NCBI GenBank assembly: GCA_907165135.1
Contig: OU015566.1
Coordinates: 2,604,001 to 2,668,000 of the forward strand
Source of the DNA: Oikopleura dioica
Lineage: Eukaryota > Animalia > Chordata
DNA length: 64,000 bases
Direction: 5' to 3'
The stretch's first letter is position 1, and each line of letters starts with the position of its first letter. Made by a program: the position numbers and the translations under genes. The notes below the pieces were generated by a model. The model was given only the letters and a program-made list of their open reading frames with translations. It did no database searches and was not told where the DNA came from. This document shows, piece after piece, positions 26,576 through 40,970 of the stretch.

Positions 26576-28102
26576 TCAGGGCGAGGAGGCGATACTTCCG
26601 GATAGAGATGAATCACTGTTGCTTGAATTCTCTTGGTCGAGTTTGAAGCTTTGATGGAGTAGTCGAATCTTTAGTTGGCGCAAATTCGTGATGACGGAAA
26701 TCAAAGTCTAACGAAAAATAATCAAATTGTCGGAAAAAAAGAAATTACCGGAATGAGTTGAGAGCGAATTCTTGCGTTTTTCTTGCATTTGAAAAAGTTT
26801 TCAAAAGCAACTGCTAGTTGATGTTGAATTTCTTCGACTGTTTCGGACTCGACAAGATCTCGCCTGTCATCGGAAAATAAGCTAAAAAGAAGCTAGAGGA
26901 AGAAAACTGTTGAAAATTCTTACCAGAGAGCGAATAAAAGCGCGGTTTCTTCCTTTCGAAGTTGAAGTCGAAAAAGTTTCTGGTGTAAATTGAGGTAGCT
27001 GTCGATGATCTCCTGAATTTAAAAATATAAACAGCCCCCTAATCGGCTGCTTTTCAACTTACAGGCGTCAAGATATAATCTGCCTTGAGCTTGAATTTTT
27101 TGTCCATGAACAAAAACGACTCATCTGCTGCATTGAATCTCGTATTCATCTAAAAACGAACATTATTTCTTAAAAAAACGGCGGCAAACCTTGAGAATAA
27201 AAATCTCGAGAAGACAGCCTCGTAGAAGAATATGCTGATCGACTTGGTGTACTTTTTCCAAGCTTTGAATTCGTGTCTAGCAGACAAAATTAAACCTCAA
27301 GAACTGAAAAAATTCCTTACCGAGAAGTCGATTATTTGCAAATAATCCTCGAGAAGCGCGCTTTTCAATCCATTATATTGCGAATTGAGAACTTGAAAAT
27401 TTCAATAATTTTGAAGATACGAATCTATCTCTTACGGGAGCCGATTTCTTCGTCCACTAAAGAGATTCTAGCATCAGCAATTCTTCCATTATTCGTGGCG
27501 ATTTTGATGACCGACCGGTGCTTTGGAGGAGTAGGCAGGAGACGGAAAAGGATTTGGTTCATCGAGTTGTCTTCTATCAGACAATCGGAAGCCTAAAATT
27601 TTCCCTAATGAGAACAGAAGAAAAAACTTACCCATGGGAATTTTTCAAGGCTTTGCTGTCTCCTGATGATTCGAAATTTATGCGGCAAAACGGGTAAATG
27701 GACGAATGCATCCAAGTAAGCTCCAACAACTGAGCTGACCAAATCCAATTCGTCCTTTTCTAGCGCTGGCTGGCTAAGCACTGCCCGTCGAAGTTTATTC
27801 TTCTCGATCACTTTTCGTTTTTCCTTGATTTCGTTGTCGCTCATGATGCATTCTCGCTTCATGCCAACTGCGAGACACTTTTCCCAGCGACAGTACGAGC
27901 AGGATCGTCGATTGACCCTGCTGATTTCGCAGTTTTTCGCAAAAGCACAAGCGAACCGCTTGCCTCCTTTGACCGATCGCCGGAAGAATCCCTTGCATCC
28001 TTCGCAAGTCATTGCATTGAAGTGGTATCCAGTTGCTTTGTCGCCGCAAACTCGACACATTTTCCATTCGGAATCGGGGATTTCCGATTCTTGGATTTTC
28101 AC
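26576..28102 (-). CDS. VDR/PXR-like: Nuclear receptor, NR1I (VDR/PXR/CAR)-like
   Basis: DBD CRVCGDKATGYHFNAMTCEGCKGFFRRS; LBD exons incl. VDQHILLRGCLLEIFILK, LQLRKEETALLFAL and LISVITNLRQL; stop at 26576. Confidence 0.92.
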
Positions 28103-29031: not shown

Positions 29032-30774
29032 ATGAAAGGAGGAACTAAAATTTCTGCGAATGCCAGACAGAATTATAAAAGAAAATTAGATAAAATTCAT
29101 AAACTAATGAAAGAAGCCGTCGAAATCGACGGTTATGAAGACCGAATTCTCTCTTTAACCGTTGTTTCTTGTTCGCTTGAAAATCGTGGCTCTGAAGCGA
29201 GAGAAATCATCGCTCAGGGAAAAAACGCGTTTGAAGCTAGAGCCTCCAAGAAAAGAAAAGCAGAGGCACTTTTGCTTGACGAAACAGTCAATGCCCAAGA
29301 ATTAAATCAAACAGTAGCTGAACTTCCACCAGATTCAGAAGAAGAGTATTTCTGGCTCGATCCAAAATTACAAGCAAGAGCAGACGCGCTAGACCCTTTT
29401 GAAATTCCACCTCTCCCACAATTAAACACCCGAGCCGATTTTGCCGAGCTGCACACGACCGAAATGGGTCAAATTCAAAGAGAAGCCCTCTTCGATAATT
29501 TAGATAAATATAAAAAGTATGGACCAGCCATGTTTGAAGAACATGCTAATAAAAAGTTACGCTTACTTTACAGAAAGCATGAAATGTTTTCTGGGCAAGT
29601 TAAAGATCATTGTTTCGTTATCCGAAGCTCTAACAGGCAAATCTGGTGGCTTTCAAAAAGGGATAGACCAAAACTCGAATCTGTTTTTAACAAAAAAACC
29701 AAGCTAGAGCGAGCTATCCCAGATGACCCATCGCTTTTAGAACTCGTAACAAATGTCGAAAACGATCTCATTGCGCAAAGAGCGACAAGTTACAGGCAAA
29801 GTTCTAGCCTTAAATTAGCCCTTTCGAGACAGGGAGTTGATTATGATGACACTTCTCTATACAATAAAGTTTATCGAATCCTCCTTCAGAGCAAATGGAC
29901 ATGCGGCAATCTTGAGCCTGTCAAGCCATGCGTACCGGAGTCAACTCGAGTTGAACGTTTAAATTTCGCCCACTGGGTCCGGGAAAAATACTCAAAAGAC
30001 AGAAATTTTCATGATAAAATAATCCATTCTGATGAATGTAGCGTTATGTTAAATTGCACTAATGATCAAAATTTCAAAGCCTGGCGTCAGAAGGGCGAAA
30101 TATTAGCTCCTAGCGAGTTTAAAGTAAAGCGCTCTGCAACAATAATGGTCTGGGCGGCGGTGTCGATAAATTATAAATCAGAATTAATTTTTTTCTTAGA
30201 AGAATCGAAAAGAACATTAAAGGGCGTTGAAAAAACAATTTACAAAAGCCTTACATGTGGGTCAACGGAATACAAAAACATCGTTTTGGAGCCCTTTTTT
30301 CGAGATTTAGAGGCTAAAGGAATGATTAAAAATAACAAATTAGACGGAAAATTTTACGCTCAAGACGGGGCCCCATCACACACGGCTTCATCAACTCTGG
30401 ATTTTATTGATGATAAGATCGGCCTTGAAAATTGTATCACGAAAACAAAAGCTTATAAAAAACGACCAGACTTGGCGGAAAAAGCAGCGACAGTGTGGCC
30501 AGCTTCAAGTCCAGATATTAATCCTATGGATTATTCAATTTGGAATACACTTAAGCGAAAAGCAAAAATGATTCTTGGATCTCAAGGATATTTTAAAAGC
30601 CTAGAAGAAGCTAAAACGATTCTTGCTCAGGCGTGGAATGAAATTCCACAGGAGCAGATTGATAGAGTCTGCGCCGGTTTTGAGCGGCGGTGTGAGGATA
30701 TCATCCGCGGTGATGGCCATTTTCGTGAGGGAACTCCTCTTAATCGAGGCGCCTATGGAAGTCAGCAAAAGTAA
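29032..30774 (+). CDS. DDD transposase (maT/DD37D-like motifs, long N-terminal extension)
   Basis: 580-aa ORF with IIHSDEC, YAQDGAPSHT and WPASSPDINPMDYSIWNTLK. Confidence 0.95.
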   Translation: MKGGTKISANARQNYKRKLDKIHKLMKEAVEIDGYEDRILSLTVVSCSLENRGSEAREIIAQGKNAFEARASKKRKAEALLLDETVNAQELNQTVAELPPDSEEEYFWLDPKLQARADALDPFEIPPLPQLNTRADFAELHTTEMGQIQREALFDNLDKYKKYGPAMFEEHANKKLRLLYRKHEMFSGQVKDHCFVIRSSNRQIWWLSKRDRPKLESVFNKKTKLERAIPDDPSLLELVTNVENDLIAQRATSYRQSSSLKLALSRQGVDYDDTSLYNKVYRILLQSKWTCGNLEPVKPCVPESTRVERLNFAHWVREKYSKDRNFHDKIIHSDECSVMLNCTNDQNFKAWRQKGEILAPSEFKVKRSATIMVWAAVSINYKSELIFFLEESKRTLKGVEKTIYKSLTCGSTEYKNIVLEPFFRDLEAKGMIKNNKLDGKFYAQDGAPSHTASSTLDFIDDKIGLENCITKTKAYKKRPDLAEKAATVWPASSPDINPMDYSIWNTLKRKAKMILGSQGYFKSLEEAKTILAQAWNEIPQEQIDRVCAGFERRCEDIIRGDGHFREGTPLNRGAYGSQQK

Positions 30775-31255: not shown

Positions 31256-33653
31256 TTTAGCTCTTCAGAACCTGACTCAGGTTTTCAACACAAGTTGCCG
31301 AGCCCAGCTAGCCGCCGTCTTCAGGTAAGGAAAATAAATTAAAACTGTTAAAAATTATTCAAGGAATAAAGCAGAGTTCGAAATCTGGCGAAAAATCTCT
31401 GCCCCTGCTGTTTCCTTGCTCCTCTGTGTCTCCATTTTACTGCTTATTCTAATCTAACTGTTTCGAATAAAAATAAAAAGAATTTTACAGAAAAATGTCT
31501 CTGGGTTGTCAAGGGAAGTCTCAGAAGCGAATGATTTTTCAAAACATAAAGCCGGCCCATCTAGAAAAATTTTCAATAACAACGTCTAGAAAATCCAGGC
31601 GCCCGCCGCTTTGCATTCGAAACAATTTTTGATTCTCATCGCTCGTAAAAAATTATCGAAATTACACGATGATTGGTATTAAAATATTGGTTGTTTTATG
31701 GAAAGAACGATTCCACAAATTATTTTCTGTAATTATTTAATTCTCAGGAAACAAATTTTTGGGTAATTATTCAGCTGTGAAATGTGACCGGGGGATTCTT
31801 TGAAGGGATTAGCGCCCGACGCCGGAGCCACTTTCCGCCCTGGGCGAGAGTTGGAAAAGTCCAAAAGCGAAATTTCTCCTGGGCCTTGCGCCCGAGCGCC
31901 CTCCCCCATGTGCACACACTCGAAATGAAACGGCGGTATGAACTTTGGAAGACATCGATAATTTTTTATTTCGGGTTCACAAGAATAACTTATTGCTTAT
32001 TTACAAATGACTTTGAAAGATTGAAAAATTTAAGGGTAAAAATATCGAAAATGACGATTCTTTAGTAGATTTTTCTCCGAAATTTAGTTGAAATTTATTG
32101 ATAAAAACACGGCTGAACATCAAAAGAAATCTCTTTCCATGAAAATCTCGGATTCCTGCGTCTAACCCTAAATTTTTAATTTCTTGAAGAAGCACGATCT
32201 GATTATGAACATTTTTGTCAATAAAATGACTTGAAATAACTTGAAAAAGTTACGAGTTCAAAAATGAACTCTTTTCTTTTCTCTTTCTCTTTGTCCCACT
32301 TTTTTCATACCTTTCATTTTCCATTTTTTCACCGTTTTTTCGATTTTTCGGATTTTAAATTTTTCGATTTTCTTGAAAAAGTTCAAATTTGTGAAATGAA
32401 GTGCTTGTTTGAAAAGGTCTGGGGCCTTTGAATATCATCGGGACGGGCTGCTCTCCTTTCTGGCTGTCTATATTTTTGCTGTCTATTTTTTCTACCGTTC
32501 AATTTCGACTCGAATCTGCCTCGATTTGACCCCCTTTTCGGCCCAACAAAAGGTCAAAATGATGTTTTGAGTCGAAAAGGGCCGTTTGAACTTTTAAAAC
32601 TTTCAAATTTCTTGAAATAAAAGGCGAAAAAAAGATAAAATTCGAACGAGCTTGAACTTTTGAATCGCCAGAGGGGCGCTTGGACTAGTTACGTAACTTC
32701 TTTCCGCGGAGTTGTTAAAATTGAGCCTCGGCGATTTTGAAAAGAGCTCAACTTGAATGACATCGTAGTGAATTCAAGTAACTCGTGTTAAATGAGCACC
32801 AAATGAGTCATTATTTTGACGCTAGAACTGCGCGAAATAACGTTATTTCTGTGGAAACCTGACATTTTTAAGGTCGTCAACAGCGATTTAGGCAGTGACT
32901 AAATAATAAGCGATATGATCCATATCATATGGACACCCTTAATTTAGAAACTATCGTTAATAATAAAGAAGCTGAAATCTTTTACTGCAAGTCAAGTTTA
33001 AAGTAAAAATGCTAAGCTAGAATTAAAATTAATTATAAATATGAAGCCTTTTCGAAAAAAAAAACGATTTTTCTTTTCAAAATTATGGGAGAAAAGCTGC
33101 TGAGAAAAATTGAACTTTCTCTTAGGGGCAAAAAAGAGGCGTCACAATAAGGATATCAGACAATTAAATAGGGTGTCCGTATTGTGCGAACTAAGTATTT
33201 CTTGAGTTTCAGTCTATAAGACCTCGTTCGCCTCGACGCGTACACTGGCGATCGATCCGATTGTTTTCTTATCCTTTCCAAAAAACAATCTAGTAGACAT
33301 TCGCCTTGAATCTAGACAGTTATGCAATAATTCTATCGTTTTTCAGACTTCGAAACCGTTGACCGCTGACCTAGAAATTAAAACATTACCACATCAATAT
33401 TCAATTTTCTCTGGCAAGCATATTTTCTTGTTAATTTTTTGATCAAATCTGAGTTCAAAATATAACACCGTATGAATTTTCTCTGTATTAATTATCGGTA
33501 TCACAAGAATAAGAAACAGAATTTTCATTTTCTTTGCAGAAGTTTGATTTCGCCTGAAATTCCCTCTTGTTCACTCTCGGAGATTTCAGAGTGATAGAAG
33601 TTTCGATTGACGTCGGAAAGTTCACCACGGTTATTTGCTTGATGAAAACGTTG

Positions 33654-35200
33654 TCAGCTTCCATTTTCGAGTCGATGCTCTTTTGCCCGCCCCAATGAGT
33701 CGAGTACGGTTGCGAGTGATTGACTGTGGATTGGCGGGTTCGAAACTGATTGGCATTTGTTAATTGAACTAGAAATCATCAAAGTTACCTTGGAGTATAA
33801 TCTGAAATGGTGAAAATATGCGATTGGAGTCAAGGAGAAATACGAAACAGCCATAACCCTAGCAGCGTAAAGAAGCCAACTAATGATCACGTGCTCAAGA
33901 AACCAATTCGTCGCAAAGGATCTTGAAATATCAATCAAATAAGTTGGGAACCAGCCAATTGTGAACAATATACAGTCGGACATGTTGTAGCGATAAAGCA
34001 TCGTCATCAACGAAGAACCTGATTTTTCCGAACGACCTCTAGAATTATTTGACTTTTTGTTTTCAAGAGAAATTTACATGTGCCGTCGAGAAACATTTCG
34101 TTGAATCAGATTTTTAGACGTGCTTTTGTTTCCCTTTTTCTTTTTGACCTTGAAATCGTTCGATGATATTTTTATCACCACAAGCGCCAGTAAAGAGCAT
34201 AAAGAAGGGATCAAGTACAAGCAGCAAAAGAGGAGGAATTTGTAGTTTTGCTGGATTTTGTGGTAGGAAGAGGCTGAAAATGATCAAGATCGAGGGCATT
34301 TCGGAAATTTGGAGGGCTTTTTCGAGTCAAAACGGTCAAACTGGATCGACTTATCCTTATTAACGGTGATTGACCAGGAAAAAGCGTCTAAAAATGACGT
34401 CTTGGATCATTTCCTGGCATGCACATTCCACAGATGTCGTCGTACCAGAAGCCAATGGGCGAGGCCATTAGCACTGGCAACGAAATCACGACAAAGCGGA
34501 TCATATCTTATCCAGGGTCAATTAAATCAATCTAAAGCAGAATGCTGTTGAAGCTCATTTTATAGTGAATGACCCGTCTTTTTATAGCATGAGAAACTGG
34601 TCAGTGTTTCGCGTTTTAGCGGACTGATGATGCCAATTGACCGATCTTTTCGTAAATAAATTTGAATAATAATGCTGTTAACAGTCAATACCTATGACCA
34701 TTGCAAGATTCGAAAAGATAGAAACTCCAGAACAGACATAAATCCAGGTCATTCCAATTTTACAGATCTGAATAAATAAGAAATTAATGCTGAGCATCGT
34801 TTTTGGGGCCTCGAATTTGAGAAGTTCTTACCAATGATCCTTGACTCCAAGAAGGAGAGACAAGTACAAAAGCGTCGATTGGAACAGTAATGACAAGATA
34901 CGAAATCGCGAAAATCGAATTTATCCTGACCATCGATGATGTCCAGCTTTTGTTGTTATTGAGGAGGAATAACTGAAGACTGTGCCCAATCAATCCAACA
35001 ATCGCTTTTTATAAGGATTTGCATGATGCATCCCATTATGGGATCATTTTTTTATATAAGGAGAATCAATCTATATTGCGTATTCCTTGACAATAATCAC
35101 GATAATCAGGGCGACGAAGTAGTCCTGCCATCTCGTATCAAATTTATTCACCCAGTCAGATTCAGACCCATTATTTGAGTCTGGAAGGTGTTTTCTAATT
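33654..35200 (-). CDS. Rhodopsin-family (class A) GPCR, divergent
   Basis: TM1 IVGLIGHSL; TM2-ECL1 ...VPIDAFVLVSPSWSQG; DRY-like KDRSIGIISPLK; TM5-like FLLFCCLYLIPSLCSLL; TM6 LFTIGWFP; TM7 SYFSLTPIAY. Exon joins and start are approximate. Confidence 0.7.
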
Positions 35201-35269
35201 TGTTATTTATGAGAATTATGGTGGTAGTCAAGAAGGGTCGGAGACAGTCAACGAGGTAGACTTCGGTTA

Positions 35270-35306
35270 TTCAGGGTAAGGGTTAGGGCTAGGGTTAGGG
35301 TTAGAG
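35270..35306 (+). repeat. Degenerate interstitial telomeric-type repeat (TTAGGG-like x5-6)
   Basis: TCAGGGTAAGGGTTAGGGCTAGGGTTAGGGTTAGAG. Confidence 0.7.
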
Positions 35307-36152
35307 CTAAAAAAGATGTCTGGGTTTGTGTTAGTGGCTTAAACACCTTCCTGAAATATTCGCTAGCTCACTTTGCTCAACAGGTTTTTTGAAGTTCATC
35401 AGGAAGCTGCAGTTTGCCTAGAATCATTTGAATTTAACATTTTCTTACAAATTAAAAATAGATAAGCAAAAACCTCCATTCTCTGCTCTGTTCATTTCTC
35501 CCTTTGTATCTTATTATTTTCTCCCTTCTCTTTCTTTCTGTTTCTCTTGGACCGTCTTGGGTTTATCGACTTGTACTTTGGAATCGGTCCGTCGATTTTC
35601 TCAAAATCTGTCAAACTCAGAAGGCGGGGAACGTAGCCAGAGTCAATTTAAAAATCAGCAGCTGTACGGCCGAAATCGCTGTGCGCCCGAACGCGCCCGA
35701 AGAAACACGAACGCAAGGAGGTTTATTTTAACATGCATCGTTGCATCAACAACTGACACTACTTCTACTACTGTACTGATATTAATGACTATACACACTT
35801 TTGCACATCATTGAATTCAAGTATTTGCTCAAGGGACATACCAGGTACCAGTCTCATTAATTTTTGAAAAAAAAACAAGTTCGAAAATTAGTTTCGAATC
35901 AAAAATAATTTTAATTGAGCTTCTTATCATCAAAAACGTACCTTTCTGTAAATATCAATTCTAAGTTCTTTGCATGCGCAGCTTCGTATTTCTTTCATAA
36001 TGTCCATTAACAAAAAAAAATAAAAATATTTTCTTCAAATTTATTAGTAAAGGAATTTTTGTCACGCGCGATAGCAGTCAAAATCTCAACGCCAGATGCT
36101 AAACCGACAAAGTCCGTGACAGACAGATACTGTTTTATTCAATCTGAAGCTA

Positions 36153-36475
36153 TTAGAGAATGTAACTTGATGCAGGTCCATAATTCGATCGGTCGAGATT
36201 TCGATGATAGTTCGATTCTAGGTGACTTTCGACTAGCCCTTCAATGGCGGTCTTTCGACAGATCGTTGTAAGAGAACCGCCATTTTCGAAGATTTTCTTC
36301 ATGCTGATTTCGTTTGCAAGAGCATCTAAAGAGGTGAATTTTTAAGATAAAAAAGTGTCAAACCTCTGAAACACTCATCAAAAAGCAGCGTGAACTCAAG
36401 AATTTCCCTTTCCAATTCTGCATTCAGGGCTCCAAAGGAAACTCCAATGAAAAGAAGAAAAAAGAAAAATTTCAT
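36153..36475 (-). CDS. Small secreted two-Cys protein / peptide-precursor candidate, copy A
   Basis: Exons 36475-36364 and 36325-36153, 38-nt GT-AG intron: MKFFFFLLFIGVSFGALNAELEREILEFTLLFDECFRDALANEISMKKIFENGGSLTTICRKTAIEGLVESHLESNYHRNLDRSNYGPASSYIL*. Confidence 0.85.
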
Positions 36476-36861
36476 TTTTATGTTGTTCTAGGTGTTGACA
36501 ACACTGTTGAGACTGATTCTAATTACGAGTAAAGACGTATTATCTTCTGATGAATTCTGACGTCTTCGATTATCGAATGTAACTATTGATGAATAGACAA
36601 GATTTTCAGAAACAGAAGTTCAAGTGCAGAGTTCCAAATTCAACTTACCCAAGATTCACTGAGGTGAAGGTGAGTGAAGGTGAAAATTTTTACCTCATCT
36701 CACCTCACCTAAATTTTTCGAAAATTGGTTTTCACCAAACCTCACTTTTTCACCTCACTCTTGAGTGAAGGTGAAAAAGTGAATTTGGAGCTCATTAATT
36801 TCTTCATTGCACCCCCAAAAATCACATATTCCATGACAGACAGACTTTTTTATTCAAGCAA

Positions 36862-37192
36862 TTAGAGAATGAAACTTGATGCAGGTCCATAATTTGATCG
36901 GTCAAGATTACGATGATAGTCGCTTTTCAGATGACTTTTCACCATTTCTTCAATCGCTTCATTTCGGCAGATCTCTGAAAGAGATCCGCCACTTTCGACG
37001 ATTTTTCTTGTTTCATTTTCATCCTCGAGGCCATCTTAAAGGGTGATAATTGTATGAAAAAGGTCTCAAACCTCTAAAGCACTCATCAAAAAATAGCTTG
37101 AACTCGAGGAATTCCCTCTCAAAAATCTCAAGTTCTGAAATCAGGGATCCAAAAGAAGCTCCAATGCAAAAAAGAAAAAACGAAAAGTTCAT
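36862..37192 (-). CDS. Small secreted two-Cys protein / peptide-precursor candidate, copy B
   Basis: Same intron position: MNFSFFLFCIGASFGSLISELEIFEREFLEFKLFFDECFRDGLEDENETRKIVESGGSLSEICRNEAIEEMVKSHLKSDYHRNLDRSNYGPASSFIL*. Confidence 0.85.
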
Positions 37193-37463
37193 CATTTAAT
37201 GATTTCGAGTTCGAAACTGATTCTTATATGAGTTCAGACGCACTCAAATTAATTCTTACATCTTCAATTATTGATTTTTACTTATAAATTATTTAGGATA
37301 TTGAAAGGTTTTACGAATTCGTTCAAGAATGGGGCAAAAACAAAAACAGGATCATGAGGCCGTAATTATAATTTCATTCGTTAATTGCCCCGTAATTGGC
37401 GCGCTTCTGTTGGCAAAAATTGCAGGTCAGAATATTTTTCGGAAAACATTGAAATGAAAGGAA

Positions 37464-40400
37464 ATGGGCGACACTGAAGATATCTTTTCGAAAATCAGAA
37501 AACGAGAGGACCAAATTAACAGGAGAGAGATCAATAGACAGATAAGCTTTGGGAGCAGTGTTAGGAGGCAGATAAGTTTGAAGGAGCTTGGGAGGATGGA
37601 TACGATTGAGCTTGGATATGAGGTAAGGAGGGATAAGATTGGAGGGCCTGGCCAACTTACTTATCAATTTAAAGGCAAACAGAAGAAATTGCCGCCGCAA
37701 AGAAATCGTTTACCGATACTACCAGCAGGTGATTCACAACTTTTTGGACCGTCCCTCCGAAGGAACCCTCGGCCGGTTCTCGACCCTTTACCACTTCCTC
37801 TCCTTCATTTTGGTGGTTGCCTGTCTTTGTCTGACGGTATTCTCGACGATGGATGCTGATCCACGATTCGAAGAAGCGCTGAATTTCATTGAAAATATCA
37901 TGATCGTCCAGTTTTTCTTGGAATACATTCTGCGAGTTTGGAGCTCGGGCTGTAGAACACGATATAGGTAAGAATATTGAAGAAAGAGTATTTCAGCGAG
38001 CATCATTTTTTATAAAAGATATGACAAGAAACAAAATTTACAAAATGCAGATAAGATTAAGAGTTCTATAATTCCATTCGAGGTATCGGAATAGCTGCTG
38101 CTCCAGGAACCCATTGAGCTAAAATTACGATGAGTCATCATTTCAAGCATTTTCTTACCTTTTTGGCGGTTTCGGCATCACTCAACGAGCTTCCGAAAAA
38201 ATCCAATCTTCAAAAATATTCAAAAAATCATATGACCAAAGTGCTTACTGGAATTGATTTTTGAAGCGTTCAATTTCGATGTCAACAGCTTCATTTTTTC
38301 TCAGGAGCTTCTGGATTTTTCTAGTTCTCACTTTGACCCAATCGATCATGTGACCCGTTGCATACTCTGTCGCTTGGGTGATCAAAGCGATGAGAACTTG
38401 CGGGTCCTTAGCCGGCATTCCCGCCCAATCTTTGATAAGTTCAGGGTCAGTCCATTTTGAGGTGTTGTCGGGACTTCCTTGTTGTCTCCATTTTGCCTGG
38501 GTACAACTTGAAAAAGAAAAGGGAAAAAGAATTTCTACCTCCCAGACCATTTGGTTGGCCATATTGACGACGACTTGAGTTCGAATGATTTTGTCACCCT
38601 TTTTGATTTTCTCGATTGATTCTCGCTCATATTTCACTAAAAATAGCGAAATGAGACCCTTATTTTTCAGATAACTTACATGGTGAAGTCTTGAACCGGA
38701 ACTCTTCTAGCACATCTCCCAAAATTTTTTCATCATCGAAAATCTTCTCTGCTCCCTTTTTCGCCTCGGCAATCAGTTCCAATCCGAGCTCAGTTTTCCA
38801 GAATTTCTCATTTTCCGCAACGCTTGACTCGCATTTCAGCACTGGGTCACCGTGAAAAAGAACGGAATCGGAGTAGGCAAAAGCTCTAGAAATCAGCTCT
38901 CGTGCGATGATTTGCGCCAAGTGGTCGAATTCGCCAATTTCTAGCGCTCGCTTGAACCGTTCGGGATTATTTTGCAGGAGCCAGTCTTGGACAATCCAAT
39001 CTTTCACATCACGAATCGCTTTTTCGCGCTCTTGAGGAAACGGGGCGACGTAGGCTTTCTTGAGCTCAACAATGAGATTTGGAAAGTTGTCATCCCACTT
39101 TTTCTTTGCAGCGGCGAAAAATTCTCTTGATTCGTCGTTATCCCAGCAACACATTTTTTGATTAAAAAAGAGCGGATGGGATGCTTCCGCTCCGGAGAAG
39201 AGGTGTCTATTTTTGATCTAATGACCTTATTAATTGCTAATTTACTATATGGCGCGATCACCAATAAATTAAGGGGAATGCGCGGAAGATTGCGCTACTG
39301 CTGCCGAATCTTCTCAATCTTGGACTTGGTCGTCATCATCGTTGGTTTCTCCATGCTCGCACTTGGCCGCGACAATGAATCATCTCGATCGTTGTCCGCG
39401 ACGTCAACTCTCCGATCAATCCGTTTTCTCCAAATCGCCCGGGTCTTCCGCCTGGATCGCTGTGGAACGAGCTGGAAGTTGCTAAGAAGCGTTTTTCTAA
39501 CTCACGCGAAAGAGCTTCTCTCGGCGGTGTATCTTGGATCCCTGACTTTGGTTTTTTCGTCTTTTGCGATTTATCGACTCGAAAGTGGAATAAATCAACA
39601 GGTATTTTATCAAAAGAGGCCCGTTTTTTCATTGCTGGCCAATAAGGATCAACCTTTCAAATTTTCTTAGAACGGAACTGACCCCTTCGGTACTTTTGGC
39701 GATGCTCTCTGGTGGGGCGTATCAACCTTTTCGACCATCGGCTATGGCGATAAGGTACCATCAACTGGCATCGCGAAATTCATCTCAAGCATCCTGTCCA
39801 TCATCGGAATATGCTTCTTCGCCCTACCTGCTGGAATCCTCGGCACTGGATTCGCTCTGAAAGTTCAAGAGCAGCACAGAGTAAAGCACAATGTTAAACG
39901 AAGAATTCCAGCGGCGAGGTTGATTCAAACGCTTTGGAAGATTCACGCGGCTGAGCAGAGTATGCTCAGAAGATGCAGACGCAGCCAGTAAGAGGGCATT
40001 CTATTTGAATTTTCTCATTTGTTGAATTAGACGTGGTTCCTTCAGAAAGAAGAAAAATGAAATTTATCATGATCTAGTTCATACTCAACCAGAAATTCAA
40101 CAAGAACGGTCTCCATCGGCTTTTATTCAAGGTTTGATTCTCGAGATTTTTACGTGACATTCTTTGACAATTGTAGGTTTTGCAGGAATCCTATCTTCAA
40201 TCAAGAACCGGCAAGAAGACGAATGCTTTCTCAGCAGTGACTCTGGAGAATATTTTAAAAATGCATCTGAAGGAGCCAAAATTCAAGCAGTCAGATTTAT
40301 AACAAAAGTCAAGTTTTTTGTTGCTCGAAAACAATTCAGAGTAAGCCCTAGAAAATGACTTGTTCCTGATTTTTTTCAGGAAGCGCTGAGACCATATGAC

Positions 40401-40601
40401 ATAACAGATGTCATCGAGCAATATTCAAAGGGGTATCTTTTGGTGCATGACAGTGTCAAAGCTATTCGAGCCGGAAACGATGAGATAAATCTTGAACTTC
40501 AAGGTGAAAATGATGAAATAGCGAATTATTGAATGCTTGTTTTAAGCTCTTCGAGAGAAGATGTCGTTGATGATGTCAAAAATGGACAGGATTATTACTG
40601 A
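37464..40601 (+). CDS. KCNQ: KCNQ (Kv7) voltage-gated K+ channel
   Basis: NFLDRP...[14 protein letters not shown]; S4 [17 protein letters not shown]; pore [20 protein letters not shown]; [19 protein letters not shown]; helix [18 protein letters not shown]. Confidence 0.97.
38070..39154 (-). CDS. Hypothetical multi-exon gene nested antisense in the KCNQ intron 37967-39272
   Basis: Open segments 39154-38680 (MCCWDNDES...) and 38637-38250 joined by GT-AG introns, with further small exons; the 3' end is approximate. Confidence 0.65.
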
Positions 40602-40970
40602 TCAGCGGACGTCAAGTGTGGCCCTTGCACAACTCAAAATCGAGCAAAACCTTGGCAACGCGAAGTCAAAGAGGATCGAAAAAGCCAAATCATCATCTCT
40701 CGAAGGCAAAAGCGAATCATGTCCTGAATGAGTACTCTTCAATGTTAAATACAAAAATATGAATATGAAATTATGAAATGAAACGACTCTTGATTGTAAA
40801 AAAAGGAAAGATATCTCTCTTAGTTTCATAAATCTTATAGAAGAAAAGGGAAAAGATAACATGTTAATAATTAATATTTGCTTAATTTTCCCTTCACCCA
40901 TTTTTTGGAAATGACAGATGTAACACTGTCAGTATGTAGTTTTAAGTTCCGATGTGAGTACTTGTTCGAA

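Follow-up and report, generated by a model that had tools for sequence, protein, structure and literature searches.

In vertebrates, pro-neurotensin carries a signal peptide, an acidic helix, two Cys residues and a peptide whose Tyr-Ile-Leu end lies about 35 residues after the second Cys. Engagement of the receptor NTSR1 depends on the RRPYIL core, and NTSR was not found in urochordates or cephalochordates (preprint, bioRxiv 10.64898/2026.02.02.703354). For the tunicate Ciona, mass spectrometry has established the existence of free-acid peptides, which activate GPCRs specific to tunicates (PMC8936170, PMC6475428). All six Ciona peptides NTLP1-6 have Pro at position -4 (PMC8936170), and the sole known NTLP receptor resembles adhesion GPCRs and not class A receptors (PMC6475428). 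The Ciona YFV/L peptides (ci-yfv/l; PMC8936170 Table S1) are short free acids with an aromatic residue at -3 and hydrophobic residues at -2 and -1. Galanin and spexin have Tyr9 and Leu10 (PMC4764904).

Here, a 64,000-nucleotide stretch of the Oikopleura dioica genome (contig OU015566.1, positions 2,604,001 to 2,668,000 of the forward strand; referred to as the window) was analyzed. It contains two tandem genes, A and B, which by their sequences are an undescribed two-gene family of predicted small secreted proteins. With modest confidence, we favour their reading as lineage-restricted precursors of a putative free-acid signalling peptide.

Structure, surroundings and relatives of the gene pair

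Both genes are located on the minus strand, are intact and consist of two exons, with a spacing of 387 bp. Gene A (37195-36862) comprises 98 codons for 98 amino acids and gene B (36475-36153) comprises 94 codons for 94 amino acids. For comparison, a third copy was available from a 1-kb Tara Oceans contig (L003), where the protein P0001 is encoded by a haplotype of copy B. The features of the pair are as follows.

37072..37195, minus strand: gene A exon 1, with signal-like N-terminus, acidic amphipathic helix and the first conserved Cys (37081-37079)
37035..37071, minus strand: gene A intron, 37 nt, GT..AG, phase 1
36862..37034, minus strand: gene A exon 2, with variable linker, second Cys (36969-36967), helix, conserved 18-residue tail and stop
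36849..36854, minus strand: gene A AATAAA, from the sequence
36626..36793, strand unspecified: dispersed MITE-like repeat in the A-B spacer, matched at about seven further sites of the genome
36364..36475, minus strand: gene B exon 1, with signal-like N-terminus, acidic helix and the first Cys (36373-36371)
36326..36363, minus strand: gene B intron, phase 1 with GT..AG ends, 38 nt long; the Tara haplotype L003 has 36 nt here
36153..36325, minus strand: gene B exon 2, with second Cys (36260-36258), helix, conserved tail and stop
36134..36139, minus strand: gene B AATAAA, from the sequence and also from the comparison with the Tara haplotype

In exon 1 of gene A an additional in-frame ATG is present at 37192. 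The AATAAA lies less than 20 bases past the stop in each gene. Both introns are in phase 1 and interrupt the same codon, just past the first conserved Cys. Since the introns of the three copies measure 36, 37 and 38 nt while the exon frames are kept, there is strong evidence that this segment is spliced; the gene caller's translation of P0001 reads through the 36-nt intron. Strong hydrophobicity marks the N-terminal 16 residues, with hydropathy peaks of 2.3 and 3.0, and on this measure the N-termini of A and B are consistent with a signal peptide. Two acidic amphipathic stretches contain one Cys each. Two Cys residues are common to A and B, and a third is found in the signal peptide of A only.

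Alignment of the two repeats gave a score of 399, compared to 28 ± 4 (maximum 46) for 200 shuffles. The duplicated unit spans about 500 bp, including upstream DNA and the 3′ UTR (37327-36819 vs 36624-36101). A preliminary description of this DNA had reported a direct repeat of ~370 bp; the repeat itself was confirmed, its length proved to be greater. Two intact two-exon secreted proteins with a shared intron and two conserved Cys, as described there, were all recovered from the sequence. A reading of the locus as tandem duplicates coding for predicted small secreted, peptide-precursor-like proteins is supported.

Gene A lies head-to-head with a voltage-gated K+ channel gene (window 37464-40760, plus strand; Ion_trans matches), which from its motifs we take to be KCNQ-like. 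The first ATG of the channel gene is 269 bp from that of A, so that it is nearer to A than the GPCR discussed below is to B (754 bp). A bidirectional promoter common to A and the channel gene is possible. Inside an intron of the channel gene two antisense frames on the minus strand (38245-38637 and 38660-39154; 130 and 164 aa) had no Pfam match; these are probably one nested orphan gene. Upstream of B there is a CRE-like GACGTCA (~36555-36565, minus strand), which the Tara haplotype retains and whose counterpart in A is degenerate, and AGAATCAGT is kept shortly before the ATG of both A and B. In the Tara haplotype L003 an ~80-bp MITE-like arm upstream of B forms an inverted pair (1-80 and 225-305). 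Elsewhere in the window, a nuclear receptor DNA-binding domain, by eye of the VDR/PXR type (27605-28102, minus strand), and an intact 580-aa Tc1/mariner-like transposase frame (29032-30774, plus strand), which had no exact record in the contig collection searched, were observed.

Relatives of the pair were sought within the genome and beyond. Spliced models were searched exon by exon, P0001 being the sole full-length query. Searches of the whole genome (64.3 Mb, 19 contigs) returned just two precursor copies, A and B, and additional paralogues were dismissed on this ground. With a profile of both second exons, P0001 was the sole real relative among 1.84 billion proteins (E 3e-31). Three repeat-rich matches of the same search (P0002-P0004) were rejected as low-complexity artefacts. 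Pfam and PDB searches with the precursors gave no match, and word searches with exon 2 of B and with P0001 returned nothing beyond P0001 itself. JGI metagenomes, queried by protein and by a degenerate pattern of the tail, gave no match, the ESM Atlas held no relative of the precursors, and a language-model search with the precursor returned nothing >0.78. In the literature no paper on Oikopleura peptide precursors of this type was found, and a query with the letters of the tail peptide gave chance word matches only. Provisionally, the family appears to be Oikopleura-restricted.

The conserved tail and its predicted release

The two proteins are most alike at their C-terminal ends. While exon 2 of A and B shows 66% protein identity, the last 18 residues are alike at 17 of 18 positions. 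The last 18 codons differ by three synonymous changes and one replacement (Y/F), which puts exact counts to the near-invariant C-terminus with mostly synonymous differences noted earlier. The tail is polar and ends in (Y/F)-I-L directly at the stop, with one tail per gene: YIL-stop is found in copy B and the Tara haplotype, and FIL-stop in copy A. Ser occupies position -4 in all three copies. The predicted peptides are the following.

36865..36897, minus strand: predicted 11-residue free-acid peptide of A, ending SSFIL, after a single Arg at which cleavage is predicted
36156..36188, minus strand: predicted 11-residue free-acid peptide of B, ending SSYIL, after a single Arg at which cleavage is predicted; identical in the Tara haplotype

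No dibasic site flanks the tail, and single Arg residues only are found near it. Two of them are candidates for cleavage and would give peptides of 11 or 15 residues. The second Arg has a His five residues before it and a Ser right after it, a context which presumably fits the rules of monobasic cleavage. The conserved stretch reaches 7 residues upstream of the proposed cut. The convertase P domain was found at seven loci in the genome. For the cleavage after Arg put forward in the preliminary description a plausible single-Arg site is thus present in the sequence, at which cutting may occur. AlphaFold models placed helices before the tail and left the tail poorly ordered, at low confidence (pLDDT 49-50); both models were set aside as uninformative, as were the shape matches in the Atlas (best TM 0.54, bacterial helices).

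Divergence was analyzed on three sequences of one lineage (A, B and the Tara haplotype), on which selection and gene conversion are inseparable. The dN/dS along the precursor, a check proposed earlier, ranged from 0.11 to 0.43 outside the signal peptide and points to purifying selection. Between A and B the last 18 codons gave 0.11, compared to 0.17 for the part of exon 1 behind the signal and 0.43 for mid exon 2. Over the first 38 codons of exon 2 replacements differed at 0.29 per site, and this value fell to 0.025 for the tail (Fisher p = 0.0003). Synonymous divergence (pS) also decreased, from 0.61 in the rest of exon 2 to 0.20 in the tail (p = 0.02), and inside the tail the difference between synonymous and replacement rates was not significant (p = 0.06). 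Noncoding parts of A and B were 68% (3′ UTR) and 72% (intron) alike. The tail protein of the Tara haplotype is the same as that of B, while 5 residues encoded elsewhere in exon 2 differ.

These comparisons support purifying selection, with the whole mature protein apparently constrained and the tail most of all. As synonymous divergence is low in the tail too, gene conversion between the copies probably contributes to the sameness of the tail. Together with the within-tail value (p = 0.06), the low tail pS means that conversion alone could account for much of the pattern. Tail conservation as proof of a bioactive peptide is therefore weakened by the homogenised synonymous sites; gene conversion, which the preliminary description had itself named as a competing cause of this conservation, is probably in part borne out by the same sites.

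According to the favoured precursor reading, the signal peptide of A and B would be removed, and the two acidic amphipathic helices would fold with one disulfide as a propeptide. A prohormone convertase would then cut behind one or the other Arg of the tail and free an 11- or 15-residue peptide with the hydrophobic free-acid end (Y/F)-I-L, which may act on some GPCR. This mode would be like that of the Ciona-specific free-acid peptides NTLP, LF and YFV/L, with A and B a member of none of these groups. Selection, and probably also gene conversion between A and B, would keep the tails alike, and the GPCR next to the pair would be a candidate receptor only.

The foremost alternative, clearly less probable and still to be reckoned with, is that A and B act uncut as small secreted helical proteins (hormone-like, or in house, mucus or defence), with tails alike mainly by conversion. 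Purifying selection across the whole mature region, Cys residues included, would suit such proteins, as would the lack of a dibasic site. A contribution of conversion is suggested by a tail pS of one third of that in the remaining exon 2 and by some A-like bases which the Tara B haplotype bears in the tail and the 3′ UTR. However, replacement divergence falls 11-fold in the tail and synonymous divergence only 3-fold. Moreover, the 3′ UTR just past the stop is only 68% alike, so that a conversion tract would have to stop at the stop codon.

The neighbouring receptor

A class A GPCR at 33654-35200 had been described next to the pair. The receptor was confirmed as a class A member, and its extent turned out to be larger (35399-33488), beginning 754 bp beyond the B stop codon on the same strand. 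Its predicted exons and its paralogues are listed below.

33488..35399, minus strand: divergent class A GPCR, nine predicted exons, ~420 codons
35399-35347, 35194-35092, 35004-34832, 34767-34692, 34645-34598, minus strand: predicted exons 1-5 of the GPCR
34506-34399, 34273-34078, 34038-33789, 33745-33488, minus strand: predicted exons 6-9 of the GPCR
G000:C4:5062100-5064300, strand not given: GPCR paralogue L009
C4:901000-904300, strand not given: GPCR paralogue L011

The protein has a seven-TM layout with the motifs Trp..Cys-Lys before TM3, DRS, and WFP in TM6. Its TM6-7 exon reached an Atlas score of 0.94 to 7tm_1 clusters, and 22 of the 30 matches listed were 7tm_1. With three-member profiles of the receptor family, PDB matches were nearly all to class A receptors. 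For TM1-2 these were GALR1 (E 0.011), PTGDR2, KISS1R, kappa opioid and NTSR1 (E 0.16), and for TM6-7 BRS3 (E 0.003), bradykinin B2, SSTR1 and beta-1 adrenergic, in both cases weak and mixed. Adenosine A2a, matched by one receptor exon (E 3.2), was dismissed as an identity. Exon-wise Pfam searches gave no match to this GPCR, which is too divergent for them, and a word search with exon 3, length-limited and weak for a receptor, returned nothing. The receptor is missing from the ~70 loci found by the 7tm_1 profile in the genome and must therefore be very divergent. By its profile matches it leans to peptide receptors, with no named subtype assignable.

Two paralogues on the same contig are 31-54% identical by exon, and the three GPCRs share a Cys-Gly-x-Cys-Met-Pro motif in loop 2. 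Hydroxypyruvate-isomerase-like, CUB-like and synaptotagmin-like genes were seen by eye as neighbours of the paralogues. All eight introns of the GPCR are GT..AG. The exon 2-3 junction (35092/35004) is one base short when it is set where the intron-less paralogue requires: L009 has no intron at this position and the same residue count. A canonical in-frame alternative, with the acceptor at 34972, would cost 11 residues of TM1. As minor non-canonical introns make up ~10% in O. dioica (PMC7072748), the junction may be a GT..AA intron; it may also reflect an assembly slip (one missing base) or a broken allele.

Compatible with the precursor reading, and unlikely in our estimate, is the proposal that A and B encode the ligand of the adjoining GPCR, which would make the locus a linked ligand-receptor unit. 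B and the GPCR lie 754 bp apart on the same strand, and peptide receptors are what the exon profiles point towards (GALR1 E 0.011, BRS3 E 0.003). With ~70 class A loci among roughly 17,000 genes, the chance of a GPCR neighbour is ~1% for a given gene. However, this value precedes selection: small secreted genes are many, and the locus was picked partly for its neighbour. Lipid and amine receptors also occur among the PDB matches, which are weak, and in the assembled sequence the receptor has one out-of-frame junction. No related peptide gene was found within the 10-15 kb examined around either paralogous receptor. The gap greatly exceeds the spacing seen in operons, and B carries an AATAAA of its own; both argue against co-transcription with the GPCR, and an operon of B with the receptor was rejected on these grounds. 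The ligand-receptor link, argued from adjacency, is thus weak.

Comparison with neurotensin, Ciona peptides and galanin

It is quite improbable that a very remote homology connects A and B with vertebrate pro-neurotensin/neuromedin N, with the two-Cys propeptide and the Tyr-Ile-Leu end of its first peptide retained. Like the vertebrate precursor, A and B would be secreted precursors with two Cys residues upstream, and they end 34 residues after the second Cys, compared to ~35 in vertebrates. The residues near both Cys presumably bear a loose resemblance to the vertebrate precursor. Copy B has the free-acid Tyr-Ile-Leu end in common with neurotensin and neuromedin N. In contrast, Ser and not Pro is found at -4, and Ser and Ala are found in place of basic residues at -5/-6; the tail therefore lacks Pro-4 and Arg-Arg, a motif required for engagement of NTSR1 (bioRxiv 10.64898/2026.02.02.703354). 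Dibasic flanks are absent as well, each precursor holds one peptide, and its length is ~95 residues compared to ~170. No vertebrate match was obtained among the 1.84 billion proteins, and the language-model search gave nothing >0.78. Pfam PF07421 (Pro-NT_NN) had no match to the exons, P0001 or the genome, in a search whose filters drop weak matches and whose control matched nowhere. The neurotensin likeness seen in the preliminary description is accordingly not supported beyond the last three residues, with no Pro-4, Arg-Arg or dibasic site.

The tail was also compared with the Ciona peptides. An aliphatic free-acid end is common to NTLP1-6 (IL, II, VI, IV) and to A and B, and Gly-Pro occurs inside NTLP2 and 3 as in the A/B tail. 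The NTLPs differ in having Pro at -4 and a small residue at -3, where A and B have Pro at -7 and an aromatic residue at -3. Precursors of the NTLP, LF and YFV/L groups carry several related peptides, whereas A and B carry one tail each. With YFV/L the tail shares shortness, the free acid, the aromatic residue at -3 and the hydrophobic residues at -2/-1, and Ser at -4 is present in YFV2 and YFV3 as well. YFV/L peptides have Phe at -2 and A/B have Ile; the end is chemically close, but the Tyr-Phe-Val/Leu motif is absent. A and B also differ in having a single predicted peptide, which ends at the stop codon and follows a putative helical propeptide with two Cys, and no similarity was found between the Ciona YFV/L precursor and A or B. 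Chemically, the predicted end of A and B is nearer to the YFV/L peptides than to NTLP or neurotensin.

That A and B are recent, unexpressed or decaying open frames is very unlikely: although no annotation or transcript-derived protein was found in the databases searched, frames, splice sites and polyA signals are intact in three copies at dS up to ~0.8-1.2, and dN/dS is well below 1. Hardly credible is the reading in which A and B are tunicate survivors related to the neurotensin precursor and their peptide activates the GPCR 754 bp away, which looks unrelated; it would place the root of that precursor before the vertebrates and make the locus a physically linked peptide-receptor unit in an animal genome. 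Equally remote is a shortened galanin/spexin-type peptide, for which Tyr at position 9 of the predicted 11-mer (copy B) with aliphatic residues next to it, and GALR1 as the best TM1-2 match of the neighbouring GPCR, would speak, but which lacks Trp2, Thr3, Gly12 and dibasic sites, sits at the precursor end, and had neither a Pfam Galanin match at the locus nor a PDB peptide match. On the features compared, A and B would not be members of the neurotensin, NTLP, YFV/L or galanin families.

Lineage-specific peptides escape homology searches. Oikopleura is a chordate with a tiny, mappable nervous system, and A and B supply two defined short predicted peptides together with three orphan receptors, a small and cheap case for deorphanisation. 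If the neighbouring GPCR were the receptor, the locus would be an unusual instance of ligand-receptor adjacency in an animal, and if the propeptide were homologous to pro-neurotensin, the origin of that family would move before the vertebrates. On present evidence, the pair appears to add one small new family to a kind of tunicate signal that is familiar already.
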